Shown here: piece after piece, positions 9,400 to 63,566 of the stretch
Layout of the letters: every line of letters begins with the position of its first letter
Position numbering within the stretch: the first letter of the stretch is position 1
NCBI GenBank assembly: GCA_010909165.1
Contig: MU008183.1
Span: 950,114-1,014,113 of the forward strand
Source: Anthoceros angustus
Taxonomy: Eukaryota > Plantae > Anthocerotophyta
Length of the DNA: 64,000 nt
Direction of reading: 5' to 3'
Made by a program: the position numbers and the translations under genes
The notes under the pieces: model-generated
Told to the model about the DNA's origin: nothing
The model's input: only the letters and a program-made list of their open reading frames with translations
The model's database searches: none

Positions 9400-9957
9400 C
9401 CCGAGTCCGTCGCTCAAACATGAAGATACAGCAGCACACCCGACTTGCCATGGGATTCAACTCTTCTCTAACTTTGCGCGTTTCGAGTTCTTGGCCGTCC
9501 GCTCCCGTCAACTCGGACGCCTATGCACGATCGGATACGACCTAACTCGTGGTAGGTTTGAGCCCCATATTACACCCGGGTCAGTTCGCTCGAAAATCAA
9601 GATAAATCAGTTCGCCCGAGTCTCGCTTCAGATGGGATTTTCGACTCTTCTCTAACTTTGCGGGTGAGTTAGGTCGTATACGGTCGCGTATAGTCGTCCT
9701 ACTTGAGCCGTAATATATTTTAATCTTTTGGCCCTCTGTCTCTTCCTCTTTGATGGTGAGAGAGCCCTCTACATATAAGGAAGAAGAAGAAGAAAAGGAA
9801 AAATCTATTACAGTCCACTTGGATGGAGGGGAAGATGTTAAGATAAACACCCTCCTAGTCCTAGCCCTTGACTGTTGAGCATGGAGGGGAAGATGAATGA
9901 GAAACACTCTCAAGGGTTACAGGACTCATGAAGTGACTTTTTGGATGGACTTCAACA
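9400..9957. mobile_element. LTR-like sequence ending in ...TTCAACA immediately upstream of the PPR gene
   Basis: Non-coding, with internal direct and inverted repeats and a TATA-like tract. It ends in the CAACA terminus typical of LTRs; a TGTTG occurs at 6902. No TSD was found. Confidence 0.3.
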
Positions 9958-9976
9958 AACTGGTGGGTTTTGTAGC

Positions 9977-12900
9977 ATGACAGAGAGTGCTCCTCTTCCC
10001 GTTTGGCTGACTTCGAGGAATGGATTGTTGGCAAACAACGAATCTGCGAGTTGCAAGACATTTGCACCAAAGCCAGCCCGCCCAAGAGGGGCTCTGTCTG
10101 GGCACGGATCGTCCAGCAGATCGTGGAGCCTGCCTGAGGATCCTGACCTTGGCGGATATGCAGGATTTGGAAGTGGGGTGACGGCTGAAACCGTGAGCAA
10201 CTTGTGCTATCAGGGGCAGCTGAGTCAGGCTGTTGAGGCTTTGGGAGTTCTGGTTCAGTGCGGCTGTTGGGTGTCCGAATCACTCTTTTGCACTGTGGTG
10301 AAGAAATGTATAGTCAAGAAAAATCTTGTTGTGGGTCGCCGGGTCCATGCTTTCACGGTGAAGAAGGGGTACCAGTCGGATACGTTCTTGGGCAACCACA
10401 TTCTGCGAATGTATGCTTCTCAGGGCAGGTTGGAAGACGCGATGAATGTGTTTGCAGTGGTTGCTGTGCCAGATGCTTTCACGTGGTCTGCCGTAATTTC
10501 TGCCCATGTTAAACATGGGCAAGACAAGCGGGCTGTAGAACTGTATCATCGAATGCGGAGGTCAAGTGTGAAGGCAGATGCCCATGTGCTGGTTGCAGCC
10601 CTTCAGGCTTGTGCAAGGGGATCAGACCTGGAAACTGGGCAGACGGTGCATGCTGACGCGTTGGCCTTTGGCCTTGAGCGGGATCTGTTTGTCTGTAACT
10701 CCTTGGTGAACATGTATGCGAAGTGTGGCAGCTTGGAAGATGCTCGGAGAGTGTTTGACGGGCTTGGTCAAAAGGATGTGGTGACGTGGACTGCTCTGAT
10801 TGCAGGATATTCGCAGCAGGGCCTGGGGCAGGAAGCTCTTCGTCTTTACAGTGTTATGCAAGAAGAAGGCACGGCTGTACCCAATTCGGTTACATTTGTG
10901 TCTCTGTTGCAGGCATGCGCCAGTGTGGGCCCTCTGGCTTTGGAGAAGGGGAAGGAGCTCCATGCACGGATTAGAGAACAAGGATATCAAGCTGATGTGT
11001 ATGTGGCGAACAGTTTGGTGAACATGTATGCAAAGTGTGGCAGCTTGGAACATGCTCAGAGGGTGTTTGACGGACTTAGTCACAAAGATGTGGTGGCCTG
11101 GAACGCCATGATAGCAGGCTATTCCCAACAGGGCATGGGACAGGAAGCCCTTAGTCTGTACACTGTCATGCAAGAACAGGGAATCGCTTTTCCAAGTTCT
11201 GTGACCTTTGTGTGTCTCCTGCAGGCCTGCGCAAGTGTGGGCACCCTGGTGTTGGAGACAGGGAAGAAGCTTCATGTTCAAATTAGAGAACAAGGACATC
11301 ATCATGATGTGTTCGTAGCCAACAGTTTGGTGAACATGTATGCAAAATGTGGCAGCTTGGAAGATGCCCAGAAAGTGTTTGATGAACTTGGACATAAGGA
11401 TGTGGTGACTTGGAATGCCATAATAGCAGGATATGCACATCAGGGTATGGGCCATAAAGCCTTTAGTCTCTACAGTGCGATGCTAGGAGAAGGGATGGCT
11501 GTACCCAACTCCGTGACGTATCTGGTTCTCCTCCAGGCATGTGCAAGTTTAGGCATCTCGGCTTTGGAGAAGGGGAGGCAGCTTCATTCTGAAGTTAGAG
11601 AACAAGGACATCAGGATGATATGTTTGTAGCCAACAGTTTGGTTAACATGTATGCCAAGTGTGGCAGCTTGGAAGATGCTCAGAGAGTGTTTGACGGACT
11701 TGGGCAAAAAGATGTGGTGTCGTGGACTACTTTAGTAGCTGGGTATTCCCAACAGGGTATGGGCCAGGAAGCCCTTTGTCTCTACAGTGCTATGCAAGAA
11801 GAAGGCATTGCTGTACCCAACTCCGTGACATATGTGTGCCTTTTGCAGGCTTGTGCAAGTGTGGGGACACCGGCTTTGGAGACGGGGAAGCAGCTTCATG
11901 CGCAAATCAGACAACGAGGATATCAAGCTGATGTCTTTGTAGCCAACAGTTTGGTGAACATGTATGCAAAGTGTGGTAGCTTGGAAGATGCTCAGACAGT
12001 GTTTGATGGACTTGGTCAAAAAGATGTAGTGACATGGAATGCCATGATAGCAGGGTGTTCCCAGCACGGCATGGGGCAGGCAGCTCTTCGCCTCTATGGT
12101 GCTATGCTAGAAGAAGGCATCATCGCCCCCAATTCTGTGACGTATGTCTGTCTCTTGCAGGCATGTGCAACTGTGGGGGTATCAGCTTTGGAGAATGGGA
12201 AGCAGCTTCATGCAGAAATTAGAGAACGGGGACATCAAGATGATGTGTTTGTAGCCAACAGTTTGCTGAACATGTATGCAAAGTGTGGCAGCATGGAAGA
12301 TGCCCAGAGAATATTCGACGGACTCAGTGAAAAGGATGTGGTGACATGGAATGCCATTATAGCAGGGTATGCACAGCAGGGCATGGGGCAGGAAGCCCTT
12401 CGTCTGTTCAGCACTATGCGTACAGAAGGCACCTGGACACCCGATTCGGTGACCTTCGTGTGTCTTCTCCAGGCATGTGCAAGTATTGGTACTTTGGCTT
12501 TGGAGAAGGGGAAAGGGCTTCATGAGCAAATTAGAGAACTAGGATACCAAGCTGATATGATGGTAGCCAATAGTCTGGTAAACATGTACGCAAAGTGTGG
12601 CAGCTTGGAAGATGCTAGGAGAGTGTTTGAGGGACTCGATGAAAAGGATCTGGTGACATGGACTGCAGTAATTGCAGGATATTCCCAGCAGGGCATGGGT
12701 CAGGAAGCTCTCCGTCTCTACAGTATGATGAAAGAAGAAGGCATGGCTGTACCCGATTCTGTGACATTTGGGTGCCTCCTGCAGGCATGTGCGAATGTGG
12801 CAGCGCTGCATCTTGGAAGGGAGCTGCATGCGCAGATTGAAGAAGAAGGGCTTGAAAATGATTTGATTGTAGCTGGCAGTTTGATAAACATGTACGGCAA

Positions 12901-13768
12901 GTCAGGGGCCATGAAAGATGCACAGCAGGTGTTTGATGCATTGCCCCAAAGAGACGCGGGCACCTGGAATGCACTCATTGCAGGCTACAGTTGTCAAGGA
13001 GACAGTGAATTGGTCTTTGACTTGGTGCAGAGAATGCTAGAGGATGGGATACAGCCAGTGGCCATCACTTTCCTTAGTATACTAACAGTATGCAGCCATG
13101 CAGGTCTAGTGATCAAGGGGAGAGAGTACTTTGAGGCTATGAGTAGGCAGTACGGCATCACTCCTGATGTTGAGCATTACACATGCATGGTGGACCTCCT
13201 GGGGCGGGCAGGCCACCTGGACGAGGCACTAGACGTGCTTAGGACAATGCCTGTAGTGCCCAACGCTGCGGTTTGGTGCACTCTGTTAGGTGCTTGTCGA
13301 AATTGGGGCAACGTAGATATAGGGCGCTATGCTTTCGACCAAGCAGTGAAGCTAGACAACGAAGTTGCTGCAGCACATGTGTTGATGTCGAATATATACA
13401 CCGGTGCTCAGATGTGGGAGCAAGCACGTATTGTGCAGGAGAGGAGGATGAGCATCAAGGCCTGGAAGCAGCCGGGTCAGAGCTGGTGGACAGACAAGGA
13501 CGGACTCGTCCATAGTTTCTTGGTTGGGGATGAGAAGCATCCCAAGAGGGAAGCAAGGCGGAGCCAGGAGTCCTCCAAAATGAGGCAACAAGGATTTCTT
13601 CCACATCTCGACTCGTTGGGGGCAGACAAACCAAATGATACAAGAGCAGACGCTTTGTTTCCAATCCCAGTAAAGATCGTGCACAATCTGCTTTGTGCTG
13701 AATCTCATACTGCCACGAAGTGGCCTGAGCATGCTGCACTGTCAAATCATGATGTCAAGTATCGTTGA
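9977..13768 (+). CDS. PLS-class PPR protein with E1/E2 and a degenerate WW-type DYW domain (organellar RNA editing factor family); intronless
   Basis: ORF with repeated S-P-L triplets (VANSLVNMYAKCG / VVTWNAMIAGY / SVTFVCLLQAC), then P2-L2-S2 (VEHYTCMVDLLGRAG), E1/E2 and KQPGQSWW..VHSFLVGDEKHP. The first ATG is at 9977; the ORF-track start at 9941 is TTG. Confidence 0.95.
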   Translation: MTESAPLPVWLTSRNGLLANNESASCKTFAPKPARPRGALSGHGSSSRSWSLPEDPDLGGYAGFGSGVTAETVSNLCYQGQLSQAVEALGVLVQCGCWVSESLFCTVVKKCIVKKNLVVGRRVHAFTVKKGYQSDTFLGNHILRMYASQGRLEDAMNVFAVVAVPDAFTWSAVISAHVKHGQDKRAVELYHRMRRSSVKADAHVLVAALQACARGSDLETGQTVHADALAFGLERDLFVCNSLVNMYAKCGSLEDARRVFDGLGQKDVVTWTALIAGYSQQGLGQEALRLYSVMQEEGTAVPNSVTFVSLLQACASVGPLALEKGKELHARIREQGYQADVYVANSLVNMYAKCGSLEHAQRVFDGLSHKDVVAWNAMIAGYSQQGMGQEALSLYTVMQEQGIAFPSSVTFVCLLQACASVGTLVLETGKKLHVQIREQGHHHDVFVANSLVNMYAKCGSLEDAQKVFDELGHKDVVTWNAIIAGYAHQGMGHKAFSLYSAMLGEGMAVPNSVTYLVLLQACASLGISALEKGRQLHSEVREQGHQDDMFVANSLVNMYAKCGSLEDAQRVFDGLGQKDVVSWTTLVAGYSQQGMGQEALCLYSAMQEEGIAVPNSVTYVCLLQACASVGTPALETGKQLHAQIRQRGYQADVFVANSLVNMYAKCGSLEDAQTVFDGLGQKDVVTWNAMIAGCSQHGMGQAALRLYGAMLEEGIIAPNSVTYVCLLQACATVGVSALENGKQLHAEIRERGHQDDVFVANSLLNMYAKCGSMEDAQRIFDGLSEKDVVTWNAIIAGYAQQGMGQEALRLFSTMRTEGTWTPDSVTFVCLLQACASIGTLALEKGKGLHEQIRELGYQADMMVANSLVNMYAKCGSLEDARRVFEGLDEKDLVTWTAVIAGYSQQGMGQEALRLYSMMKEEGMAVPDSVTFGCLLQACANVAALHLGRELHAQIEEEGLENDLIVAGSLINMYGKSGAMKDAQQVFDALPQRDAGTWNALIAGYSCQGDSELVFDLVQRMLEDGIQPVAITFLSILTVCSHAGLVIKGREYFEAMSRQYGITPDVEHYTCMVDLLGRAGHLDEALDVLRTMPVVPNAAVWCTLLGACRNWGNVDIGRYAFDQAVKLDNEVAAAHVLMSNIYTGAQMWEQARIVQERRMSIKAWKQPGQSWWTDKDGLVHSFLVGDEKHPKREARRSQESSKMRQQGFLPHLDSLGADKPNDTRADALFPIPVKIVHNLLCAESHTATKWPEHAALSNHDVKYR

Positions 13769-14600: not shown

Positions 14601-14762
14601 GGGTTCATTAGCAAAGCTTGTAGGGTTGTGTGTGTATAAATCAGGTGAGACTTCGGGCCATTAAGCTGTGCTTAGCTATGCTCCCTACTCCAAGATGTGT
14701 GTCCAAATGGCTTTCCTCAAACGGACACAAGTGTTATAAGAACGTGGCTGTGAAGCATCCTA

Positions 14763-14945
14763 CTTAGATGGGGTGCTTAGAGGGAGTGGGTGCCCTTGGT
14801 GCTAGTAGTTTAGGCAAACTGCTTCGATCGTCACTTAGATGGGGTGTCTAGATGGAGCGGATGCTATTGGTGCTAGTAGCTTAGCCACACCATGGTACTA
14901 AGATGGGGAGCTTAGAGGGAATGGATGCCCTTGGTGCAAATTGGT
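14763..14945. repeat. Three degenerate ~65-70 bp tandem units
   Basis: ct(t/a)agatgggg..cttagaggga.tgg.tgcccttggtgc at 14763, 14834 and 14898. Confidence 0.6.
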
Positions 14946-28468: not shown

Positions 28469-29821
28469 TTACAAAATGACAGTAACTCCACCCTCATCAG
28501 AAGCCGGCTCCGGCGCGATCTGCTTCTGCAGCTTGGCTATGGAGTGCCGCAATGTACTAAGCTCGCACGCAGCGTGCCGGAGATACTCGTCCGCCACAGC
28601 ATCCAGCTCCGCCTGCTGCTGCGAGGAAACAGAGCTGGAGTCGCTCGGGAGCACATTCACCGTGAACTCCTCATTCCCGACGCGCACTCGGTCGCCTCTG
28701 CTCAGGCTGAAGTCGATGGTGGACTGGTTGCCGTCGTCCGACGGCACGCTGATGTCAGGGCTGGGGCTCTCCTCATCCCCGCCCGCGGGCACCACCTCCT
28801 TCGGCCTCAGGATATACTTCTTGCTCCTGCTCTCGCTCTGTTCCTGCAGCTCGCAGTTGTATCTGGCCCCGGTGCAGGACCTGTCCAGATTCGACCTCCA
28901 CACCATCACCAGCTGCTCCGAGGTCCCGGACGTGAAGTACTCCCCGTTCTGCGAGAAGGCCGCGCAGGTGACATTTCCATCCCCATGCCCGGCCAGAGTA
29001 TACAGCCCCCTCCCCTCCCGCACATCCCACACCCGCAGTGCGTCCCCGGACGCGGAGAGCAGGAAGTGCCCCGACGGGTGGAAGCAGAGCGACTGGATGG
29101 CCCCCCCCTCGGTGTCGTAGTGCTGTACCAGCATCCGGGTCCGGATGTCGCGAATCTGGATGGCGTAGTCCGCCCCCCCGCTGGCGATGCAGTTCCCGTC
29201 CTGGCTGAACCTGGCGCAGTTCACCGTGCCCAGCAGGTCGTGGAACACGTGGATGCACTCCCGGCGCTCGAAGTTCCACAGCCGCACCGTCTTGTCGTCG
29301 CTCCCGGACACGATGAGCCTCCCGTCGTGGTTGAACTCGGCGGATCGGACCCAGTTCAGATGCCCGGCCAGGGTGAGGAGAAACCTCCGTCCCTCCACCG
29401 CCCACACCTTGAGCATCTTGTCGTCCCCTCCGCTCAGGACATGGTGCCCGTTGGGCGAGAAGGCCACCGTGCGCACCGCCCCGGAGTGGCCCTTGATCGC
29501 CCTCGACTGCCCACAAACCGTGGGCAGCCAGAATCGCAGCGTCCTGTCCTTAGAGCCAGACACGATGACGTTGTCCAGAGGCGACACGGCTATGGCGCAC
29601 ACGGCCCCTTGGTGCCCAAGAAACCTGTACGGCCTATTGCACGCATCCAGCACCCCAGGCCTCTCGTGCAGGCTCCACAGCAAAACCTGCCCATCTGCCC
29701 CTCCAGACACCAGGTGCTTCATGCTCGGCCGGAACTGGCAGGCTCCCACCCGCCCCCTGTGGCACCGGTCGTAGCGCGTCACCACGCTCGGACCCGGCGG
29801 CTTCAGCTTCCAGTGCCTCAT
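28469..29821 (-). CDS. POC1: POC1 centriole/basal-body WD40 protein; intronless
   Basis: Seven WD40 repeats collinear with POC1 (RPYRFLGH..., GHLNWVRSAEF..DGRLIVSGSDDKTVRLW...RECIH..., LVQHY, FHPSGHFL, GRGLYTLAGH, GEYF...VMVWRSNLD), followed by a C-terminal coiled segment. Confidence 0.88.
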   Translation of the reverse strand: MRHWKLKPPGPSVVTRYDRCHRGRVGACQFRPSMKHLVSGGADGQVLLWSLHERPGVLDACNRPYRFLGHQGAVCAIAVSPLDNVIVSGSKDRTLRFWLPTVCGQSRAIKGHSGAVRTVAFSPNGHHVLSGGDDKMLKVWAVEGRRFLLTLAGHLNWVRSAEFNHDGRLIVSGSDDKTVRLWNFERRECIHVFHDLLGTVNCARFSQDGNCIASGGADYAIQIRDIRTRMLVQHYDTEGGAIQSLCFHPSGHFLLSASGDALRVWDVREGRGLYTLAGHGDGNVTCAAFSQNGEYFTSGTSEQLVMVWRSNLDRSCTGARYNCELQEQSESRSKKYILRPKEVVPAGGDEESPSPDISVPSDDGNQSTIDFSLSRGDRVRVGNEEFTVNVLPSDSSSVSSQQQAELDAVADEYLRHAACELSTLRHSIAKLQKQIAPEPASDEGGVTVIL

Positions 29822-29828
29822 CTTCCTT

Positions 29829-29889
29829 GCACCTTCCGTGCACCTTCCTCGCACCTTCCGCGCACCTTCCTCGCACCTTCCGCGCAACC
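29829..29889. repeat. 11-bp tandem repeat (gcaccttcc(gt/tc/gc)) x5.5 directly before the POC1 ATG
   Basis: Units at 29829, 29840, 29851, 29862 and 29873. Confidence 0.9.
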
Positions 29890-30080
29890 TCAGCATTCAG
29901 CCTCGCCCAACCTGCCTTCCCTTGCCTTGGTTTGCTTTCCTTGCCTTGCTTGCCGGCTGGCACCGACCAGCAACCGTCTTCGTTCAAATGACAGTGAACG
30001 CTTCTTGTTATTTTTACCTCCTGCTTCCTGCTCAATCAGAGGGGATTGATGGGGTTCCGCCCATGCCCACTCCAGGAGCT

Positions 30081-31635
30081 TCACAGTGTCTTGTGGCGAC
30101 GCCTGGAAGGGGCAGGCTTGCGAGGAGGGATGAGCCACTTGATCCATCCCAGCACGCCGTCTGCTGCTGCTCCTGCAGAGGATTCTGCGACTTGGGCATG
30201 ATGTAGAGGAGAGTTCCAATCCCGGGCCACCATGCTGCGGGCGAGAGCTATCTCCAGGCGATGGGTCTGGGCCTCCAGTTTCTGCTGCAACTCCACGTTG
30301 GCGGATCTCAGCTCCGCTGCTGATGCAGACTCGGCGGTTACAGCTCTGATGAGGGCGGCCTTGTCATCTGCCAACTCCAGGAGCAGGGAGTCTATGCTCT
30401 CCAGGCTCTTGAGGTGGGAGTCGGGAAGGGTGGTTGATAGCGGGATGGAGGTACTGAGGTCTCCGAGTGAAGGTGCGCTTACTCCTGCTGGCGATGGTTG
30501 TGCTGGAACCACTGATGATGAGGGTGAAGGGTAGGTAGCCGCCGGCTGGTCTTCAGACACTGGTGGTGGTTGGGATGAAGTAGGCTCTGACTCCAAGTCG
30601 TCTGTACCAGTGCAAGCATCTGCCTTCCGCAGAGTCCCTGGAGGGACGTGATGAGACTTGGAAGATTGATGGAGTCTGGAAGTTAGCACCTTCTTCTCCT
30701 CGTGGACGACCTCGAACAAGGACTTGAGATTTGCACGATCTTTCTCCAAGGCTACTACTTGTTTCTTCTGTAACTCGTTGGCAGCTACAAGGGCTTCCGC
30801 GCTTCTTTCCAGTTTCAGTCCCTGTGACCTCATCTGAAGCACACGTTCGCCTAGTGCAACCACCTCTGCTGCGAGTGTATGTGACTGCTCGACAGCAGCA
30901 GCACTCTCTCGTTGAGCTTTTTGCACCTCAGCTCTCAGGTTTGCCATAACCAGTGCCTGCGCTTGAATCTCAGCTTCCAGCTGCGCCAGCTCATCTCTCA
31001 GCTTGTTCACCACCTTTCCCTGCTGGTTGTAGTGTTCGGTCAGAGAAGAGTGGTCCTTGGCCAGTTGACCTGCCAACTCGTTTGCTGAGGCGAGGCTACG
31101 CTGCAAAGAAACATTCTCTTGGGTGAGATCCTCAATATGCTGCTCCAATGCGCTGAAATCATCAACAGTTGCTGGAGATAGCCTGTGCCTGTGCCGAACC
31201 GCGTCTCCAGGTCCGTCCTTTGATGTGGGCAATATTGGTTCTCCAGCTGGCTGGACATCATCTGATTTAGGCAATACTGGTTCTGCAGCTGGCTGCCCAT
31301 CATCTGATGCAGGCAATACTGGTTCTCCAGCTGGCTGCTTATCAGGAACAACCACAATCCCACCATCCTGCTGACCACCTGCCTCAGGCACATCGCTGCT
31401 TGGGGTGGTTGTCAGCGAGGGCACCTTCTTCCCCTTCCCTTCCCGAAACTTCTGAAGCCGCTTGAAACCAGCATTCCAGTGCTCTTGTTTCCGAGATGAA
31501 GGCTCGGCACCTAGACAAAACCATGACCACGATTGCCTGAGGCTTAAAAGAAAGGCATACAATCATGTTGGGAGAATCAAAAAGCCCGGCAGAGTGTCTC
31601 TGACGTGTGAGATCATTACCAGTTGCAAGAAACAT
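30081..31635 (-). CDS. BLI: BLISTER-like coiled-coil protein (proposed exons 31635-31620 and 31510-30081)
   Basis: SRKQEHWNAGFKRLQKFR and DDFSALEQHIEDLTQENVSLQRSL...SSLTEHYNQQGKVVNKL match BLISTER motifs. A 16-nt first exon ATG TTT CTT GCA ACT G|gtaatg splices in phase to tag|GT GCC GAG. Confidence 0.85.
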
Positions 31636-38999: not shown

Positions 39000-40000
39000 G
39001 ACACCTGTGCATTCGATTTTACGCAAGCTCGAGGTAACTTGAAATTAGAAATGCTCACCAACCAAGACTTTGCCAACAACCAACCAATTCCACTCCAAGT
39101 CATTCAACCTATCCCAGCACAGCCAGACATCGTTCTCCCTGAGATAAACCAGCCACCAGACCCCATTCCCGAGACTCCACCTGCAACACATGAAGCACCC
39201 TTCACTTTGAGGCGCTCTGCCGGCCATCGACCACCAACTCATGAATGGAGATGTTTCCCAAGATTCTTTTGCTCGGCCAACACCCAATCCACGAGCTGAG
39301 GAGCTACCAGCCCTTGCACATGTTTCACACACTGACTCAGTTCAGCTTGCTCTACATCAGGCCTTTTCAGCCATTGAAGTGAAAGGAGTACCCCTCTCAG
39401 TTGAAGAAGCTTTCAGCACTCCGGAGTGCACAATAACAGTAAAATCCGAGTACGACTCCCTCATCTCAAATAAAATTTGGAATCTCACAGACTTTCTTGA
39501 AGGCAGGAAATCCATTTCCTGCAAGTGGACATTTCGGAGAAAGCTAAATCCATATGGTAAAGTAGCAAGATACAAAGCCCAACTTGTGGCTCGGGGCTTC
39601 ACCCAAGTACCATGTTTCGACAACGAAGAAAACAGACTCTTCAACCCAGTTGCGAAGTCAACCTCCATTAGGATACTACAAGCATTTGCTACCTCACACC
39701 ACCTGCAGATACATTAGGTTGATGTTAAAACAGCATTCACATATGGGGCACTTCACGAGAAAATCTATATGCTGCAATCGCCTAGTTTCATGCGAGATCC
39801 CAAGAAAGTTTGCAAGCTCCTTAAATCCATTTACGGCTTGAAGCAGTCTGCTCATGTATGGAATGAAACCGCTGATCTGCATCTCAAGAAATGTGGCTCC
39901 ACCTCTCTCACTGCCGACACAAGCGTCTACATGCTGAGGATCAAGGACAAGTTTGCCATCGTCGCACTGTATGTGAACGGTAATTTTATTTTTGGCACTG
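39000..40000 (+). mobile_element. Ty1/copia reverse-transcriptase pseudogene fragment
   Basis: LRRS linker, then EYDSLISNKIWNL...KWTFRRKLNPYGKVARYKAQLVARGFTQ, F.PVAKSTSIRIL, H*VDVKTAF, VCKLLKSIYGLKQSAHVWN and ALYVN. Confidence 0.92.
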
Positions 40001-49974: not shown

Positions 49975-50093
49975 CTGGTCTTTAAACAATTCCCATCTAC
50001 TCCACCCATTACCAGCGCTCATGACAACTACCCTGGTCTTTAAACAATTCCCATCTACTCCACCCATTACCAGCGCTCATGACAACTACCCTG
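49975..50093. repeat. Exact two-copy 58-bp tandem duplication
   Basis: ctggtctttaaacaattcccatctactccacccattaccagcgctcatgacaactacc at 49975 and 50033. Confidence 0.92.
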
Positions 50094-51260: not shown

Positions 51261-51802
51261 CATAGTTTTTCAGACATGCTAGTGAATGCCTTTTTGGAAG
51301 GTGCTGGTGAACGCCTTTTTGATGGAATCCGTTGTGAGGTTACTCATCTCTATTATGGCCAGTATACATGCGTTCCATAAGCAACATAAAGAATAATAAT
51401 AAAATATATTATATTAAAATTAAAATAAATTATAAATTATGAAATACTTCCACCTGTTCTAGTGGTGTTTAAAAGATCGGGGACAACCGACAACAGGGCA
51501 CCAGGCCAAAGGGGGCGTGCCCCCGCACTAATCTACCCGATAACCCCCAATAGCTATCTAACTAGAGATGTGTTAGAAGCACTATAAAATCTAACTTATA
51601 TACTCTAGTAGGGAGGCTATTTACTTAACCTCTTACGCGATTAGCCTTCTATTTGTTTGGCCCTTGGCTTTGTGTCTAATGACATCTAGTAAACCGGAGT
51701 AGCTTATGGTCCTGTCTCTAACGCCAAAGCGAGAGGCAAGCACGCTGAGGAACTGCGTCCGTCCTTGGGCCGTCGTCGTTGGAGGCTCGGAGCTGGGGCT
51801 CA

Positions 51803-53485
51803 ATGGCTTGCGGTGAGGAACCCGGCTGGCCTGGTGATATCGGTGCGGGAGAAGAGGCAGAGGCGGCGTCGCTGCCGGATCAAAGAAAATTGCAACATGT
51901 TCAAGACGCGAATGCAACGGCTACGGATCGCGCGCTTCCGGTTGGCGACGAGGCTGCGCTGCCGTCTATCGAGCAGTGTTCTACATCACACGGGAATTCA
52001 CCACTATCGGCGTCACCAGACTGCGACAGGAATCCCGATGAGGACAAGGGCGTCCGGCTCGAAGGAGCTCCGACTCTCGAGGCCTTGGCAAGGAAGGACG
52101 TGGAAGCGGATCCGGAGAACCGTCTTAGCGAGAACGTGTTGGCGGAGGGTTACGATTTTGGCCAGAACGTCTTGACCGTGGATGATTACCCAGATTGGAA
52201 GGAGTACTTCTTACACGTCGATGAAAGCAATTGGGATCGGTATTCCTTGTTGGAGGGGGATCGGACCGCCTGGGTGGAGAGTGCCACTCTTACGGATTCG
52301 GATGGAGAGGGTTTGCATCGCGCAGAGGATGCAGGAATCGACGGCGATCATGCAGGGCGAGATCCGGATCAGATGCCGCTGGATGCAAACTTTGAGCGGT
52401 ATATCATGGAGCTGGAGGCACTACTTTTCGCTGATGAGGGTTTGCATCGCGGGGAGGATGAAGGAATTGACGGCAATCATGCAGAGCGAGATCCGCATCC
52501 GGGGCTGCTGGCTGCAAACACAGAGCGGGAATTCGAGGCTCCAATTTACGGTGATGAGTTTGGAACGTCACAGGCCGGCTTCGATTCCTCGGCACTTCGG
52601 GAGGAACATGGAGAGGGAAATGAATCTCAAGAGCTAGATCAGTTTCCGGCGCTGCCGGCCACTCCAGAATTGCTGGATGCACAAAGAGAGCGGACAATGG
52701 AGGAGGCACGAGTTTACGGTGATGAGGTTGCAACGTCACAGTCCGGCTTCGAATTCTTGGCACTTCAGGAGGAACATGGAGACGGAAAGGGTTTGGATCC
52801 ATCTCTGCATCAGGAGGTGCAGGCCCCTGCAGAACTGGAGCGGGAACTCGAGGCATCACCCGACGGTGATGAGGTTGCAGAGTCACAGTCCGGCTCCGAA
52901 TTCTCGGCACTCCAGGAGGAACATGGAGATGGGAAGGGCTTGGAGCGACCTCTGCCTCAGTGGCTGGTGGCCGGTGCAGAAGTAGAGCGGGAACCCGAGG
53001 CACCACCTGACGGTGATGAGGTTGCAGAGTCACAGTCCGGCACCGAATTCTCGGCCATTCAGGAGGTGCTGGCCCCTGCAGATCTTGAATTAGAGTGGGA
53101 ACCCGAGGCACTACCTGACGGTGATGAGGTTGCAAGGTCACAGTCCGGATACGAATTCTCGGCACTTCAGGAGGAACATGGAGATCGAGAGGACTTGAAC
53201 TCTGTGGCATCCTCGCCTAAGCGCAAGAGAAGTCCACATAGCTCCGAGCTGGCAAGCCCTCCAAGAACAGGCCGAAGGATCCAATTCACAAACGCTGCCG
53301 AAGCGAGCAGACTTGAACCAGGCGCGGCCGGGGCAGTAGCCGTGGAAGGATCAAGAAGTGACAATCCTCCTCCCGATCGTGGTAGTCCCAAGGGTTTGGA
53401 GAGCAAGGCCACGGCCGACGATCAGGCCCCCGCAGCACCTGCAGGTGAGCACCAGGCCCGGTTCACGGCCGCTGATGATGCTTAG
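51803..53485 (+). CDS. Orphan acidic repeat protein, paralog A (intronless)
   Basis: ~560-aa ORF starting MACGEE, with five GDE(V/F)..SQSG.EF.A.QEEHG repeats and SPKRKR. It is collinear with paralog B, with indels in multiples of 3. Confidence 0.75.
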   Translation: MACGEEPGWPGDIGAGEEAEAASLPDQRKLQHVQDANATATDRALPVGDEAALPSIEQCSTSHGNSPLSASPDCDRNPDEDKGVRLEGAPTLEALARKDVEADPENRLSENVLAEGYDFGQNVLTVDDYPDWKEYFLHVDESNWDRYSLLEGDRTAWVESATLTDSDGEGLHRAEDAGIDGDHAGRDPDQMPLDANFERYIMELEALLFADEGLHRGEDEGIDGNHAERDPHPGLLAANTEREFEAPIYGDEFGTSQAGFDSSALREEHGEGNESQELDQFPALPATPELLDAQRERTMEEARVYGDEVATSQSGFEFLALQEEHGDGKGLDPSLHQEVQAPAELERELEASPDGDEVAESQSGSEFSALQEEHGDGKGLERPLPQWLVAGAEVEREPEAPPDGDEVAESQSGTEFSAIQEVLAPADLELEWEPEALPDGDEVARSQSGYEFSALQEEHGDREDLNSVASSPKRKRSPHSSELASPPRTGRRIQFTNAAEASRLEPGAAGAVAVEGSRSDNPPPDRGSPKGLESKATADDQAPAAPAGEHQARFTAADDA

Positions 53486-54694
53486 AGCGCCGCCAACCAT
53501 TCCGAGCCGGTGGGGGCAAAGTCCAAATGGAAACGATTTCTATTAAGCTTGTCATAAAGAGATGGATAGCAGAAGTCATGGATAGCAGCCGAACAACAGG
53601 AGCAGGAAGAAGATTGACCCATTCATATTTGGTTTCAGCACCGACAGCATCAGAAGGAGAACTATATATTATTGTCCACTTGGACGGAATTTTCTGTATG
53701 GGACTTGTATTTTGACAACTTGTACATGGTGTGTCTAAGCTACTTGCACGAAGGGCATCCACTCCCTTCAGCAAATTCCCGCCAAGGGTTAGATGTTCAG
53801 TCCAAACTCCCCCCCTTTGTAGGAATTCTGGCAGTCTCTGAGTTATTCTTCAATCCGGATGCTTAATAATGACGCTCTTATAAATGTGTTTCCGGCCTGA
53901 GCCATTAGGACACACATAAACGTAAGCATATTGATTCATATTTGGATTGGTTCAGATCCGGATTCGATAATGTTGCCGAAGATGTGGATATTGCTAGTTG
54001 CCGAAGATGTGGATATTGATTCGATAATGTTGCCAAAGATGTGGATATTGCTGGATGTTGTCGAAGATGTAGATATCACTACAGCTACAGATAGTCTAGG
54101 ATGAACCTGTTTTCAAAATGCTCTTCCCGCTATTAGGTCAAACGAGTATCACACTTTTGTATTCTGCCAGAAGTTGTGAAGTGCGTACAATAAAGTGAGA
54201 TCATAAAGAGTCTTTTATGTGCACTAACTTTGGAAAAGCGTGAAGTGCGTACAATAAAGTGAGATCATAAAGAGTCTTTTATGTGCACTACCTTTGGAAA
54301 AGCACCGTAGTATGAAAAAAAGATATTTTTTTATTATAATCAATATTAATAAATTGTAAAAATATTTTTACCCAATATTTTGATTTGGTTGTAGAACCTT
54401 GTGGTCACATCATAACTATGTTCACCAAAAAAAATATAACTCGAGTAGAAGAGTTAAATATACTAAAGACGAATTTCGAAATACTTGGACAACTTGTAGG
54501 ATGGTGAGCCTAAGCTTCTAAGCTTCTACTACCACCAAAGGCATCTACTCCCTCTAGGCACCCCATCTAAGTATCCGATCGAAGGCAGGCGTTCTTATAA
54601 GTGTTTGTCCATTTTGCCTAAGCCGTTTGTTGAATTCGTTGCAGTTGATTAGCAAGAGCGAGAGGGAACGGTGGACGCTGGTAACTGGGGCGCC

Positions 54695-56476
54695 ATGGCT
54701 TGCGGGGAGGAACGCGGCGGGCCTGGTGATATCGGTGCGGGAGAAGAAGCAGAGGCGGCGTCGCCGCCAGATCAAGGCCCATTGCAACATGTTCAAGACG
54801 CGAATGCAACGGCGAAGGATCGCGCGCTTTCGGTTGGCGACGAGGCTGCGCTTCCGTCTATCGATCAGTGCTGTACCTCAGACGTGCATTCATCAGAATC
54901 GAAGTCACCAGACTGCGACAGGAATCCCGGGCAGGACGAGGAATTCCGGCTCGACTTTCTGGACGGACCTCCGAGTCCCGAGAGCTTGCCAGGGAAGGTG
55001 CGGGAGGACGTGGAATCGGTTCCGGAGAACCGTCTCCAGGAGAACATCTTGGCGGAGGATGAAAACTATTCGGAGAACGTCTTGACCGTGGATGATTACC
55101 CGCTTCCGGAGAACGTCTTACATGTCGATGAAAGAAATCCGCATCCGAATGCCCTGGTGGCGGAGAATCGCAAGAATGTCGATCCGGAGACCGCCTCGGT
55201 GGAGGACGCCACTCTTACGGAGTTTTTGCATCGCGTGGAGGATGCAGAAATCGACGGTTCTGCAGAGCGAGACCCGGATAAGGAGCTGCTGGATGCAAAC
55301 ATGGAGCGGAAAATGATGGAGCTCGAGGCACTAGTTTACGGTGATGAGGTTGCAACGCCACCGTCCGGCTTCGAATTCTTGGCATCTCAGGAGGAACATG
55401 GAGATGGAAGGGGCTTGGATGCAGCTCTGCATCAGGAGCAGCGGGGCACTGCACTAATGCGGGATTTTGCGGCACTACTTCACGGTGATGAGGTTGCAGA
55501 GTCACAGTCCGGCTTCGAATTGTCGGCACCCCAGGAGGAACACGGAGATGGAATGGACTTGGATCTATGTCTGCATCAGGCGCTGCCGGCTACAGAACAA
55601 GGGCGGGAACTGGAGGCACGTCTACTTGAGAGTGATGAGTTTGCAAAGTCCGGCTTCGAATTCTTGGCACCTCAGGGGGAACGTGGAGATGGAAAGGGCT
55701 TGAATTTATCTCTGTATCTGGGTCTGCTGACCAGTGCAGAAGTAGAGCGGGAAGTGGAGGCACAAGGTGACGGTGATGAGGTTGCAAGGTCACAGTCCGG
55801 GTGCGAATTCTCGGCACCTCAGGAGGAACGGGGAGATGGAACGGGCTTGGAGCTATCTCTGCGTCATTGGCTGGAGGCCAGTGCACAAGTAGAGCGGGAA
55901 CCCGAGGCACTACCTGGCGGTGATGAGGTTGCAAGTTCACAGTCCGGCTTCGAATTCCCGGAACCTCCGGAGGAACATGGAAAGGGCTTGGATCTAGATC
56001 TGGATCAGGAACTGGAGCGGGAACTCGAGGCATTACCTGACGGCGATGAGGTCTCAGAGTCGCAGCCCGGCTCCGAATTCTCGGCACTTCAGGAGAGACA
56101 TGGAAATAGAGAAGACTTGGATTCTGTGCCAGCCTCGCCTAAGCGCAAGAGAGGGGCGGATAGCGCCGAGGACAAGCCCTCTAAGAACAGGCCGCAGGAT
56201 CCAACAAACGCTGCAGAAGCTACAAGACCTGGATCAGGCGCGGCCAGAGCAGTAGCCGTGGAAGGATCAAGAAGTGACAATCCTTCTCCCAACCGCGGTA
56301 GTCCCAGGGGTTTGGAGAGCGAGGCTAGGGCCGACGTTCAGGACTCAGCAGCGCCATCTCCGCAGCCCGTGAGGGCAGAGTCCAAATGGAAACGATTTTT
56401 ATCGAGATGTTCAGGAAGAGATAGAAACCGAGGAACACGAGCAGGAAGAGAGAGGAACAGGAACAGGAAGAGATAG
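54695..56476 (+). CDS. Orphan acidic repeat protein, paralog B (intronless)
   Basis: ~593-aa ORF starting MACGEE, with six repeats, SPKRKR, SKWKRFL and an R/N-rich basic tail. Confidence 0.78.
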   Translation: MACGEERGGPGDIGAGEEAEAASPPDQGPLQHVQDANATAKDRALSVGDEAALPSIDQCCTSDVHSSESKSPDCDRNPGQDEEFRLDFLDGPPSPESLPGKVREDVESVPENRLQENILAEDENYSENVLTVDDYPLPENVLHVDERNPHPNALVAENRKNVDPETASVEDATLTEFLHRVEDAEIDGSAERDPDKELLDANMERKMMELEALVYGDEVATPPSGFEFLASQEEHGDGRGLDAALHQEQRGTALMRDFAALLHGDEVAESQSGFELSAPQEEHGDGMDLDLCLHQALPATEQGRELEARLLESDEFAKSGFEFLAPQGERGDGKGLNLSLYLGLLTSAEVEREVEAQGDGDEVARSQSGCEFSAPQEERGDGTGLELSLRHWLEASAQVEREPEALPGGDEVASSQSGFEFPEPPEEHGKGLDLDLDQELERELEALPDGDEVSESQPGSEFSALQERHGNREDLDSVPASPKRKRGADSAEDKPSKNRPQDPTNAAEATRPGSGAARAVAVEGSRSDNPSPNRGSPRGLESEARADVQDSAAPSPQPVRAESKWKRFLSRCSGRDRNRGTRAGRERNRNRKR

Positions 56477-56826
56477 AAACCGAGGAACAGGAGCAGGAAC
56501 ATGAGTAGATGAGCAGGTTGAAGCGCTCCGATATGCTTGCAGGGCCGACAGCATTAGCGTGAGCAGATTGGTTCAGATCTGGATCCGGTAACGTTGTGGA
56601 AGATGTAGATATTGCTCCAGCTACAGATAGTCGAGGATGAACCGTCTTCAAAATGCTCCCTGTCGTTCGGGTTTTGTCCGGCTATCAGGGCGGTTCACTT
56701 CAAGCGAGTGCCACAGCTTTGGATTTTGCAAGAGCTGTGAAGTTGTGAAGTGTGAACAGTAAAGTGAGATCACGTTTAACTTAAACAGTCTTTCATATGG
56801 AGTGCACTACCTACATACATACATTC

Positions 56827-58526
56827 CTACGTTGTGGAAGTTGAAGCCTGAGAATATAGCACCTTCCATAATGGTTCCATATCGATGTTACCTCCGGTAA
56901 CAACAATGCCCACCTTCTTACAATCTGCCCACTTCGGTTGCATCTTAAATCCTTCAGACAGGGCAGCTGCCAGGCCAACAGCTCCACTTGGTTCCACGAC
57001 TATCTTCAGTCTCTCGAAGCACATGCGCGTTGCTTCCACGATCTGCCTATCTTGGACAACAAGCACATCATCTACCAGATCTCGGAGAGCTGGCCTGCAC
57101 CCACAATGAAGAAGGCAGACTTTAAGCCAGAGCAGACGGCGAGAACTTCTGGAATGTGTGTGTGAAAGGTCACATGCCATTGGACGTACCAAGTGAGATC
57201 TCCCAACCATGCACGCAGACCATCAGCGATTGTATTTGGTGGTGACTTTATCACTCTCCCTGAGGCCTTGGATTGAGCAGCATCATCTGCCCCTTGGGGC
57301 TCTGCAGCCACAACTTTTATTCCTGGCTTTATAGATTTAGCCCCCAATGCAATCCCAGAAATCAGACCTCCTCCTGCGGTTCCAAAAGCGTTCATCATGG
57401 TCCACTGGAAGACTAACAGAAAGAAAGCACAAAGGATCTACTAGCTTAGAGCCGAAATAACCACAAAGCACATCTGTCAAGTATGACACTACAGCTGTAT
57501 CAACAGATTTGTCAAGTTTGACACTACAGCTATAAGCAGAGCACAGCCGTCTGTCACCAACACGAGCAATTCCTGAGCTTAACAGTCCCTTACCACTCAC
57601 GGGCACAATTATTGCGTCCAGTTCGGGAACTTGCTCCAGAAATTCAAGGGCTACTGTGCCTTGGCCACTGAGAGGCCGGAGAAGGCAGTCAGGATGAGAT
57701 CCATCAATCAGTGCAGGATAACAACAAAATTTGCAAGTCTATCTCTGAGTTGAAGAGAAGCAGTTCGTCTGAAGTGACTGACAGCAGACAACTTTCAACA
57801 GACCCGAAGAGACACTCAACTTACCTGATGACCTTCCCATCGTTGAACGGATGGATCAGGAGAGCGCCTGTCTCCTTCTGTATCCGAGAAGCTTCAGCCT
57901 CCCTGGCCTGAACGTTGGATTCGCAGAAGGTGACATGTCCGCCGTATCTCCTCACGTTCTCAATCTTACAAGCGGGTGCATCCTTCGGTACCACAATATG
58001 AGCAGGAATCCCCCGCAACTGTGCAGCTAGGGCCAGTGCTGCTGCATGATTCCCACTGCCACATCCACGCAGACTGCAGCCATCAGGAAGCCATTGATTG
58101 TGACAACACTCCCACTCATCCCACTCACACTCGCACCAACTCACACCTGCTGTGCGTCACCACGCCCTTCTTCGCAGTCTCCTCATCAAGGGAAAAGACT
58201 GCATTGCAAGCCCCACGGAACTTGAAGGCGCCCCTGCAGTGCCATCAGGATCTGCAGGTTGCTGCGAAAAAGTGATCAGGATAACCTGGTTGCAGCCAAT
58301 GAGGCATCCGCTACTCCACTCACCCCTTCTGGAATATCTCACACTTGAAGAAGAGATTCCGACCAGCAAGGCCGTTCAGTGAAGATGAAGTGAGCACCGG
58401 AGTCGTGTGCGAATATGCCTGGATCCGCATCCGGGCCTCCCGGATCGAGCTCAGATCCGCTGCGTACTGCCCAAAATGCGCTGGTTTGAGCTCCTCGCTG
58501 CCGTCTTGGATCGTGGGTGCTTCCAT
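56827..58526 (-). CDS. SR: Serine racemase (PLP-dependent, fold type II), multi-exon
   Basis: YAADLSSIREARMRI...TPVLTSSSLN..AGRNLFFKCEIFQKG|GAFKFRGACNAV..GVVTHSS|GNHAAALALAA...HPFND..|SGQGTVALEFLEQVPELDAIIVP..GGGLISGIA..AEPQGADDA..TIADGLRA..VVEPSGAVGLAA..GIVVTGGNID. Confidence 0.96.
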
Positions 58527-60087: not shown

Positions 60088-61175
60088 GGTTTCTTCACCA
60101 AGCCATCTAAGGGCAGAGCAAGCATGTGCCCCATGCACGAGACGTCTTATCTGGCTCAAACTCTTGAAATATCACTACTTCTTAATGCCTTCATGTCACT
60201 GCTCACATTGAACCTTGAGGGAAATTCCCTTTGAAACAAGCACTTCCACTGATCTTTCTTCCTCCAGTTTCCTCGAGGACACCAAGGCAACAAATTAGGA
60301 AACTGTTTCCCCTTGCATTTCACGTGGTTGAATTGGACTCTCAGTTATAAGGTTTGTGAGCCTCTCACGAGTCACAGTGAGATCCGTGCCTGGAGCCGGA
60401 TACGATTCGGCCGCCTATTTTAACCGGCGCTGTTGCTCGCCGTCTGAAATTGATGTCTCGGGAAGCGCGCGAAGGAGCTTTGTGCTTTCACGTGTCCGGA
60501 GCCAACTTGGCGATGGAAAGGCTGGGGATTTGATACCCACTTTAATTAACTCCGACAGGGCAGAGAGGCGCAGGTGTCGGGCGCCGAGCGGCGTCCCCTC
60601 CCGCCTGACCATCCGGACATCTGTCGCTGTCTTTCTTCTCACGTCCCAACGTGAAAATTTCGACGCGGCTATGGCGTCTTTGCTGCCGCCCTGATGCAGC
60701 CAATGTGCACCTACGCCGCCCCTGGTATGTAACGTCACGTCGCCTTTTTGCCCGGGCAGCTCGCCAAACGTGCCGCCAGCGCTATTGCCTTTCTTTGCCG
60801 GCGTTGTGTGATCTTGTTTTGGTCTTGCTCGGCTGTGGTTGTTGAAAGAGCGGGTTTGGTGCGGCTTTCTGCCGAATTTTAGAGTGCTAGGATCGGTTTG
60901 GTGTGGTTTTGTGGCGGAATTGGAATGAAAGTGTCGGGTTGTGGATTTGCGGCGGGTTTGAGAGTGGAAGGTTTGGTTTGTGTGGTTTTGCGGTGGATTG
61001 GAGAGCGGGAGCATGGGTTTGGTGGTTGGTTGTGGATTTGAGAGCTGGAGCATCGGTTGGTGCGTTTTGTGGCGGATCTTGTAGGAGAAAAGGGAGGAAT
61101 GTGCATTGTGTGTCATTTTACAGTGTGTTGAGGTTTGAGACTTTTGTTTGGCAGAGGTGCGTGGAGGTGGCAAGG

Positions 61176-63566
61176 ATGGCGTGCCGAAACAGGCCGCGGC
61201 CGCCGGATTTGCGGGCCTTGTGCAGGCTCATTTCGTGCCACCAGTCCATTCGGACTTTTTGCGTAGATCAGGAGCTGCTACGGAGCTCCTCTTGGGGGCC
61301 ATCTCTAGCTGCGGGAGCCGGGAAAGATGTGCGGGGTGATGTAGAGTCCGGAGGTGCGCCTGGCGTGCCTGTGCGGAAGGGCCAGCTGGAAGTCTGTGGT
61401 GGTGGAGATAGACGAACGGAGTTGGCACCAGCCAAGGGTTCCGCAGTTCAAGGATCAAAGGGAATGAATTCTGATCAGGGTGCGGTTCGAGGAGTGGAGG
61501 GAGCTTGTCTGGGGGTGCCGCCGGGAACTGCAGCTGGCGCCGAAGACATGGCTTCTTCGGGAGGAGATGGAGGACAGGTGACTGCGCTCAAGAGGCGGAG
61601 GCTCGATGAGGATGTGGCGGAGGGTATATGCCCCCGGCAGACTCGTTTGCGGCTCGCCAGTGATGGTGAGGGCGCTTCTGGTGTCAGATCGAGTCTCGGT
61701 AGACAAACTGAAAAGACGGATTTGGCTTCTTTCGCGAACGCAGGAGGACCTGCGAGGGTTCAAGGTGCGGAATGTGAAGCTCAAGATGCACAGAAGGCAG
61801 TTCAAAATGCAAAAACGTCTGCCATGGCCGACCAATTGGTCGGGTGTTGGCTGAGGTGGTTGGACGAAGGTGTGGTGGTTGGTAGTGGTGACCAGGAGTG
61901 GCCACCTCCCTTTCGGTGTAACGAGGTCCCCTGGAGGAGGGAAACTCAAGAAGAGGTAGCGTGCGAGCAGGATGATGGCGGCATTTGTATCCAAGACCCC
62001 CTCAAAACTTTGGGTGAAGACATTCTGTACCAGATTCTCTCACATTTGAATGCTCACAGCTTGGCACGCTGCTCAGTCCTGTCGAAGGATTGGGCAAAAC
62101 TGGCGTTGGACGACTACCTTTGGCGTCCTAAGGTTTGTGTGACGTTCATTTCCAATTTCTTCCCTGCACTTTTTCTTTCCTCTCTTAGCGTTCGTGGTAT
62201 GTACTGTGGTGGGGCTGACTTTAAACGATTGCCGCAGTGTGAGCATCTGTGGACTGGGAAAGCTCATTTGCCGCGTGCCGCAATGCTGGATGGTTTACCC
62301 AAGGCGGCAGCATACTCCAAATCTGTACACGACTCGCAGCGTGTAAGTTAAATCATTCGAAACCCTTCTGAGCAGCTGACAGATGTAACCGATTCCGACG
62401 TTCGGGCAGCAGGATCAGCTGCACCTTGCTTCTTGAAGTGTGGAACCGTTGGCTTGAACTTGTCACGGAAGCGAGAGACGACTGCAATCAAGATGGCATC
62501 TGGAGGATCTGTGTTCTCTCGTTTCGGTGGACTTGTGCCCTGTAACGTTGCCAACTAACTACCTTTATGCCTCCCGTTGCAGGTGGACATCACCCAGGAG
62601 GACCTCTGTGATCATGAGTGGAACTTCCGCTTCAAGAACGTAAGTATCTTTGTCCCTGGTTGCCTCTAGACGTTTAGCGATCTAGGTATGCGACCGTTTG
62701 TCGTGTCTTGTGGACAGTGGAATGGTTGAACCATTCTAGTTTCAGCCTGTATGGAAAGTTGAGGAGCTTTGATGCAGTCTGATGTTCCTTTTTACCGCTG
62801 AGGTTTCATTTCGTTGATTCGATCACTTGTGCACTTGTCTAAACTTATGGAATAATGTGGTGCTACGTAGTCTCCAGCATGCATCTGAACGTCTGCAGAG
62901 TTGGGGCACACAGCGTTGTCGCCATTGTTAAGGTTTGGCTTCATGGAGGCTGTCGGTAGTAGAGGGTGAGCTTGTTTTTCGAATGCAGCTTGTTTTCCGA
63001 ATGCAATCATCTGACTTTGTCCTTGCAGCAGTCTGTCCTGTTGGTCATCTCACATTTTAATCTCGCTTTGTCTGCAACAAGCGGCTGTTGTGCCCCCTTC
63101 CCCCACCTTCTTGCTTGTATTCAGGGTATCCCCCCCGCCCCCTTCCTCCTTGTATTCAGGGGTATCTCCAGCCCATCTGACCTCCTCCCACATGTGACAT
63201 GCACAGTGTGCACCAGCCTACTGGCTGAACCGGGATCCGAGCTGGCGAGGAGACGGATCTCCCATGAAGCGCTTCTTCCACCGGGACTGGTCGCATACCG
63301 CTGGAGCCGACGACCTGGTCTGGGGAGGCCATGAGAGCAACTACACTCTCACTGATGAGACGGCTGAGGATGGTACGGCCTCCCACCGGTCTGTGAGGAT
63401 CAACCACTGGCCAAAGCTCTCAGTCGTCAGAACGAAGGACTGGGGTTGGCAGCTGAGCAATCGCTTTTGCTTGTATCAAAGTGTTCCCGACTTCCGGAAG
63501 GCAGGTGGTACAGGACCAATATACAGTCCACCCCCCCTAATTGGGACTGGTTCGGAGTGCCTTTAG
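61176..63566 (+). CDS. F-box protein with a conserved plant C-terminal domain, 4 coding exons; long low-complexity N-terminus
   Basis: DPLKTLGEDILYQILSHLNAHSLARCSVLSKDW..LA.DDYLWRPK|CEHLWTGKAHLPR..|VDITQEDLCDHEWNFRFKN|CAPAYW..DPSW..PMKRFFH..VWGGHE..VRINHWP...DWGWQLSN. The start codon is uncertain. Confidence 0.85.

Follow-up and report, generated by a model that had tools for sequence, protein, structure and literature searches.

A tandem pair of orphan reading frames for acidic 49-residue-repeat proteins in the hornwort Anthoceros angustus

Can a protein whose residues are replaced at about the neutral rate still be held by selection, and if so, for which of its properties? This question is raised by two adjacent open reading frames (ORFs), here called gene A and gene B, in a stretch of 64,000 nucleotides of Anthoceros angustus DNA (NCBI GenBank assembly GCA_010909165.1, contig MU008183.1, positions 950,114 to 1,014,113 of the forward strand). 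This whole stretch is referred to as the window, and all coordinates below are its own. A first-pass annotation, made from the letters alone, had described A and B as a tandem pair of single-ORF paralogs for acidic, disorder-like proteins of no recognisable family. The reading that we favour, somewhat better supported than not, is that A and B are real, lineage-restricted, fast-evolving tandem genes for disordered acidic repeat proteins, selected for frame, length and charge. On present evidence they are an orphan repeat-protein gene pair and not a new kind of system.

Open frames, in-frame indels and retained charge

The two genes are as follows.

51803..53485, plus strand: gene A, a single uninterrupted ORF of 560 amino acids plus stop; 60 kDa, isoelectric point (pI) 4.17, net charge -89
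54695..56476, plus strand: gene B, a single uninterrupted ORF of 593 amino acids plus stop; 64 kDa, pI 4.41, net charge -71

ORF A is open from 51779 to 53485 with its first ATG at 51803, and ORF B is open from 54671 to 56476 with its first ATG at 54695. The products are 56% identical by BLASTP (E = 3e-168, over nearly their full length) and 60% identical by global alignment, and matching blocks are spaced 2892-2916 bp from start to start. The tandem arrangement described in the first-pass annotation, with a spacing of about 2.9 kb, was thus borne out, as was the marked acidity of both proteins. The motifs that it had quoted, namely the opening MACGEE, NVLTVDDYP, LDANxER..ELEAL, SPKRKR and VAVEGSRSDNP, were all recovered in both copies.

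Frame 0 contained no stop codon in either gene, and each of the other five frames contained 6 to 33. When gene A was mutated in simulation with the observed spectrum and to the observed divergence, a mean of 13.1 stops appeared and none of 2000 runs remained open; at half the observed divergence, the open fraction was 0.001 of runs. The homologous 3' flanks of A and B served as an internal non-coding control for the indels. Where the N-terminal DNA could be aligned unambiguously, the coding indels measured 9, 9, 3, 18, 12 and 3 nt, so that six of six were multiples of three. The 3' flank is likewise 83% identical between the copies, and its indels measured 17, 10, 7, 2, 1 and 5 nt, none of the six a multiple of three. 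The earlier argument that a frame kept through indels points to selection on a translated product therefore held.

Charge likewise departed from the neutral expectation. Acidic residues (D+E) at aligned sites numbered 126 in each copy, while neutral mutation of A predicted 94.4±6.7, a distribution in which none of 3000 runs reached 126. Acidic sites that stayed acidic numbered 96 of 126, against 77.8±5.5 under neutrality (p about 0.0007). Amino acid identity as a whole was only slightly in excess (0.600 against 0.547±0.021 under neutrality, p about 0.009). Taken together, the open frame, the in-frame indels and the retained acidic residues argue for selection on bulk properties, that is on translation, length and negative charge, and not on a fold. 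Selection on net charge and similar bulk features of fast-diverging disordered regions is documented in those parts of Zarin et al. (2019; PMC6634968) on which we draw.

Protein architecture and history of the repeat array

Within the two genes we distinguished the following parts.

51803..52549, plus strand: unique, acidic N-terminal region of A, which includes NVLTVDDYP (52166-52192)
54695..55339, plus strand: unique, acidic N-terminal region of B, 215 amino acids
52550..53266, plus strand: repeat array of A, 5 units of 56, 49, 49, 36 and 49 amino acids, the first degenerate and the 36-residue one shortened
55340..56188, plus strand: repeat array of B, 6 units of 48, 49, 47, 49, 41 and 49 amino acids
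53213..53230, plus strand: SPKRKR in A, a basic cluster resembling a classical monopartite nuclear localisation signal and overlapping an S-P-x-K/R site
56135..56152, plus strand: SPKRKR in B
53336..53368 in A and 56252-56284 in B, plus strand: VAVEGSRSDNP, the C-terminal conserved block

The first 60 codons are the best-conserved part of A, with 83-87% amino acid identity to B. Further along, before the repeats, A carries an internal duplication of 43 residues with a spacing of 129 bp (52307-52399 and 52436-52528) that is absent from B. SPKRKR is kept at all six positions between the copies, and the surrounding 30 codons are only 47% identical at the amino acid level. Past the sequence '...AAP' the C-terminal ends are unrelated: in A, a 57-nt insertion brings the stop, and in B the last 30 or so residues are strongly basic and are read from an AGGAAC-type microsatellite.

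Tandem Repeats Finder reported a 147-bp period in both genes, corresponding to a unit of 49 amino acids; the copy numbers of five and six given in the first-pass annotation were correct, and its unit length of about 48 amino acids is revised to 49. In the unit consensus, a variable stretch separates GDEVAxSQSGxEFxAxQEEHGDG from a following ExERExEA, so that an acidic Ser/Gly-rich segment with an EF or FEF aromatic spot is followed by a short helix-prone tail rich in E, R and L. Comparison of units across the genes gave best partners A3-B4 (87%), A2-B5 (87%) and the terminal units A5-B6 (74%). The fact that several units pair best with a unit of the other gene indicates that the array is older than the gene duplication. 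The partners do not stand in collinear order in A and B, which, with the differing number of units, indicates that unit number was altered by unequal exchange after the duplication.

Short motifs follow the repeat. SQ, S-x-x-E and F-x-x-L recur once per unit, although some units are without them and the counts barely exceed the shuffled expectation. The SQ dipeptides lie at residues 256, 275 and 312 of A and at 366, 415 and 456 of B. An SQ/TQ cluster domain, a feature of checkpoint-kinase substrates, is defined by at least three SQ or TQ within 100 residues. A and B both reach this density, but the definition has low specificity here, the sites being copies of one repeat position, and we treat it as a lead only. 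An array of Atg8-interacting motifs or LC3-interacting regions (AIM/LIR) was considered and rejected: the F-x-x-L form is present in four of five units of A and three of six of B (B2, B4 and B5 are without it), which is barely above shuffles.

D+E make up 22-23% of the two proteins. There is no transmembrane or hydrophobic stretch in either, and the first 50 residues hold 11 D/E and 3 Ser/Thr, unlike a transit peptide. Given the lack of a hydrophobic segment and the acidic N-terminus, neither a signal peptide nor a transit peptide nor a membrane anchor is indicated. AlphaFold2, run on the two-sequence alignment, gave a mean predicted local-distance difference test score (pLDDT) of 37.7; the model is helical only over short stretches, in LDAN..ELEAL and in the tails of the units. 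This prediction agrees with the disorder-like profile noted previously, and the proteins are probably intrinsically disordered. An EF-hand or other calcium-binding repeat was also considered, and no Pfam model of that kind matched.

If A and B are translated as predicted, the product would be a protein of about 60 kDa with an acidic N-terminus, an array of 49-residue units, the SPKRKR cluster and a short conserved C-terminal block. Such a protein might enter the nucleus through SPKRKR and there make many weak, charge-based contacts with basic partners such as chromatin or RNA-binding proteins, and every repeat would contribute one site of acidic-aromatic contact. We put forward this nuclear, multivalent-polyanion mechanism as a tentative proposal, more likely wrong than right, suggested by SPKRKR and composition. 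A stricter version, which we hold to be quite unlikely, is that the family is young or very fast-evolving and is selected solely as a long soluble nuclear polyanion, which would serve hornworts as a charge sponge or condensate scaffold for basic nuclear proteins, for instance when chromatin is compacted in the flagellated sperm; this would fit the neutral-rate turnover, the tandem duplication and the changing repeat number. The earlier idea of a histone or protamine chaperone found no direct support in the sequence.

Counter-evidence, relatives and rival explanations

A number of observations weigh against the reading of A and B as selected genes, or against parts of it. The ratio of nonsynonymous to synonymous divergence (dN/dS) between A and B was 0.92 overall; taken separately, the unique N-terminus gave 1.03, the repeats gave 0.99, and the unique N- and C-terminal parts combined gave 0.88 (95% intervals about 0.63-1.75). 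The differences numbered 132, 134 and 124 at codon positions 1, 2 and 3. By neither measure did the comparison of A with B show a classical signature of purifying selection on residues. The dS of the N-terminal part (0.20) equalled the distance in the flank (0.19); this equality, a dN/dS of about 1 and the even spread over codon positions together indicate that residues are replaced at about the neutral rate. The first-pass annotation had proposed dN/dS as a check and had listed a value near 1, combined with a lack of expression, as counting against its reading. The observed 0.88-1.03 agrees with the dN/dS half of that condition; the frame, indel and charge evidence nevertheless favours a translated product. 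G+C content at third codon positions (GC3) is 0.54, below the 0.68-0.85 of three clearly conserved neighbouring genes and similar to that of two others. The first 25 codons of the units are conserved alike at codon positions 1, 2 and 3, and the remainder is equally variable at all three, a pattern that fits homogenisation at the DNA level or recent expansion as well as it fits protein constraint. The equal conservation across positions suggests that the similarity of units reflects DNA-level history rather than selection on residues. The two genes share no upstream sequence, although B keeps an intact frame of 593 codons, and no relative was found from any other genome. Among the inferred properties, the acidity is dispersed, with a longest D/E run of 3 residues and a maximum D/E fraction per 30 residues of 0.37 in A and 0.43 in B, unlike classical histone chaperone tails; the low pLDDT was obtained from a two-sequence alignment, and a folded orphan would give the same; and a nuclear location or role would depend on the single conserved six-residue motif SPKRKR.

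The searches for relatives were blank throughout, in agreement with the earlier statement that no family is recognisable. Pfam returned no family for either protein at E up to 1, and PDB sequences gave no match at E up to 10. A word-indexed search of 5.8 billion proteins returned nothing for the whole of B or for its N-terminal 215 residues alone, and a HMMER profile of A and B found no relatives among 1.84 billion representatives, with no length limit. The ESM Atlas held nothing for the whole of B or for residues 1-250 of A, an exact look-up of four start variants gave no match, and in metagenome contigs both a back-translated pattern and a repeat pattern of 23 specified bases remained without a match. 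A conserved neighbour gives a measure of what these libraries can contain. The lysophospholipid acyltransferase encoded in the window is about 50-55% identical to land plant sequences generally, and its best single match, from a sequencing-run assembly, reaches 71%. That a conserved protein tops out at 71% suggests that the source species, and probably its close kin too, are missing from the searched protein libraries. With such libraries and evolution at the neutral rate, blank searches mean that there is nothing recognisable outside close relatives. The term orphan is to be understood here in this sense, as far as sequence searches can define it, and a newborn family is not implied.

The boundaries of the duplication introduce two further features.

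53945..54203 after A and 56566-56772 after B, plus strand: 3' flank of A homologous to the 3' flank of B, 83% identity
54204..54668, unstranded: AT-rich spacer preceding B; nothing that corresponds to it lies upstream of A or after B

The two copies begin to match at 51777 and 54669, in each case 26 nt ahead of the ATG. Over 500 nt upstream, the sequences of A and B are unrelated (alignment score 29, against 21.7±3.0 in shuffles), and copy B therefore cannot have inherited the promoter of copy A. An origin by retrocopying was rejected: where the homology ends, neither a poly-A tract nor a target-site duplication is seen, and A and B sit side by side in the same orientation. The possibility that the opposite strand is the coding one was rejected as well, with 7-24 stops per frame.

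We considered whether A and B might be non-functional, either as a duplicated segment with a purine-rich minisatellite that is open by chance or as a recently dead gene pair. The dN/dS of about 1, the even distribution of differences over codon positions, the conservation of units at the DNA level, the empty library searches and the lack of a promoter shared between the copies would all be expected on such an explanation. Moreover, an alternative plus-strand frame and a minus-strand frame also hold ORFs of 136-268 codons, because the strand is poor in T. It would, however, have to account for 560 and 593 open codons where about 13 stops are expected, for coding indels that are all in frame when none in the flank is, and for an acidic content 4-5 standard deviations above neutral decay. 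Nor is the open frame confined to minisatellite sequence, since it extends over the unique N-terminal 215 codons. We judge this explanation to be rather improbable. A different origin would make the ORF part of, or captured from, an uncharacterised mobile element or a satellite-like family with many copies in other parts of the genome. Acidic repeat ORFs do occur in some mobile elements; the homology of A and B hardly exceeds the ORF and the 3' flank, starting just before the ATG; a copia reverse-transcriptase fragment lies 12 kb upstream; and the spacer contains a short dispersed repeat. Set against these points, Pfam detected no transposase, reverse transcriptase, integrase or gag domain in either protein, no long terminal repeats or inverted repeats were found around either copy within 40000-64000, and the surroundings are ordinary, closely spaced host genes. 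The 64-kb window held no further copy or fragment of A or B, so within that scope the refuting possibility named in the first-pass annotation, that the unit is the interior of a high-copy element, was not borne out. A mobile-element origin appears very unlikely.

The genes could also be truly coding while the single-exon models are incomplete, with further exons upstream or downstream altering the N-terminus, for instance by supplying a targeting peptide, or the C-terminus, and with a non-nuclear role such as that of a calcium buffer or of an acidic scaffold that is organellar or secreted. The abrupt start of homology 26 nt before the ATG resembles what is seen at a splice acceptor, the ATG of B is preceded, at a distance of about 50 nt, by a T-rich ...TTGCAG, the 57-nt indel that splits the C-termini opens with CAG|GTGAGC, and neighbouring genes have introns, the gene for a pyridoxal-phosphate (PLP) enzyme being in pieces. 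Both genes, however, share the ATG and the six residues that it opens, the start context of B is good (GCCATGG), and going upstream from either ATG the frame is closed by a stop within 24 nt. A short 3' intron in A, which was tried and rejected, would be no longer than about 60 nt and would fail to bring back the frame used by B. Incomplete models of this kind are in our estimate unlikely. It is far harder to credit that the hornwort pyrenoid has in A and B its missing Rubisco linker or scaffold, of a non-canonical kind, an assignment that we regard as highly improbable. The 49-residue spacing, the disorder-like character and the one short helix-prone segment per repeat do recall EPYC1-type linkers. 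Screens of Anthoceros for a pyrenoid linker found none and required a pI above 8 (10.1101/2024.06.26.600872), a requirement that would have filtered out an acidic repeat protein such as A or B. The pI of 4.2-4.4 nevertheless contrasts with values above 8 for known linkers, an N-terminus with 11 acidic residues among its first 50 does not resemble a chloroplast transit peptide, the basic cluster that is conserved is of a nuclear type, and no binding helix is conserved at the level of residues.

The reading of A and B as selected tandem genes would have consequences if they are expressed. They would then exemplify a whole protein evolving at the neutral amino acid rate with frame, length and negative charge held, could be used to ask what cells select for in a fully disordered protein, and would add a lineage-specific component to the biology of hornworts, for which transformation and localisation tools exist. 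If selection acted on the polyanion alone, the pair would offer a clear natural example of selection on nothing but the composition and valency of a protein. Should A and B not be expressed, the locus would illustrate how long ORFs of convincing appearance can arise from a minisatellite free of stops.

The region around the pair is gene-dense, and several features of it were recorded. Upstream of A, an AT-rich intergenic stretch contains a perfect 58-bp x2 tandem duplication (49975-50090). The spacer after A contains a 64-bp x2 tandem repeat (54176-54303), 98% identical and with AATAAA, as well as a GATGTTGCCGAAGATGTGGATATTGCT-like repeat of 25/57 bp (53961-54076), of which a single copy also occurs downstream of B (56566-56616). 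Upstream of B, positions 54526-54588 of the spacer match 14761-14879 on the opposite strand, just after a pentatricopeptide repeat (PPR) gene, with 83-90% identity over about 50-60 nt; this dispersed repeat may be a small mobile-element fragment. At 56827-58144 on the minus strand, three ORFs each match a different part of the PALP Pfam model, which suggests a multi-exon gene for a PLP-dependent enzyme. It lies tail to tail with B, about 350 bp past the B stop, and the homologous 3' flank of the duplication extends almost to its last coding exon.

At a greater distance, 60903-62351 (plus strand) is an ORF of 482 codons in which a long N-terminal region of low complexity is followed by an F-box near the C-terminal part, and 9941-13768 (plus strand) is an intronless ORF of 1275 codons with very regular internal repeats, which we take, from reading its translation, to encode the PPR protein. 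On the minus strand, a 475-amino-acid WD40 propeller ORF (GC3 0.85) adjoins a 493-amino-acid ORF that has no Pfam match and is presumably coiled-coil-like, judged by eye (28469-29896 and 30081-31562). The copia-type reverse transcriptase (RVT_2) fragment at 39241-39717 (plus strand) is the only clear mobile-element coding remnant seen in the window. Other genes encode NF-YB and a steroid-reductase-like protein, and Rfam and tRNA scans of the window returned no RNA genes.

Comparison with known systems

Among nuclear proteins, A and B resemble nucleoplasmin, NAP1/SET, ANP32 and prothymosin alpha in being net negative and mostly predicted to be unfolded, and in having a cluster like a nuclear localisation signal near the C-terminal third. 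They differ from nucleoplasmin, NAP and ANP32 in showing no nucleoplasmin, NAP or leucine-rich-repeat core (Pfam at E up to 1, PDB at E up to 10), and from histone chaperones in having no long poly-D/E tracts (23% D+E, longest run 3, at most 43% per 30 residues). Profile and PDB-sequence searches showed no sequence similarity to acidic nuclear chaperones. Pfam likewise showed no motifs of late embryogenesis abundant (LEA) proteins or dehydrins, that is neither the K-segment nor the LEA repeat models, in A or B.

The linkers EPYC1, CsLinker and PYCO1 share with A and B a disorder-like character and repeats of 40-80 residues, each with a short helix-prone segment; A and B are acidic and not basic, and show no sign of a transit peptide. 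The published criteria for such linkers (10.1101/2024.06.26.600872) call for a period of 20-100 residues with high disorder, where A and B have 49 residues in 5-6 copies and a mean pLDDT of 37.7, and for a pI above 8, where A and B have 4.17 and 4.41. They also call for chloroplast targeting and high expression, and on targeting the first 50 residues, as noted, look unlike a transit peptide. Acidic transcriptional activation domains, which combine acidic with aromatic or leucine residues as described in the portion of PMC13004512 used here, are similar in that the acidic residues of the A/B unit surround F-E-F or E-F-x-A-L and in that sequence turns over while composition stays. A and B differ from the domains described there in having no DNA-binding or known co-activator domain and no aromatic spot in some of the units.

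Closest in evolutionary behaviour are the disordered regions treated by Zarin et al. (PMC6634968), as far as the sections consulted describe them, together with orphan genes for disordered tandem-repeat proteins. In A and B it is the whole protein that behaves in this way and not a linker between folded domains, and the evidence comes from one paralog pair and not from a series of orthologues. The likeness lies in the lack of detectable homologues, in a length that is owed mostly to internal in-frame tandem duplication, and in a sequence that drifts at a near-neutral rate with net charge held.

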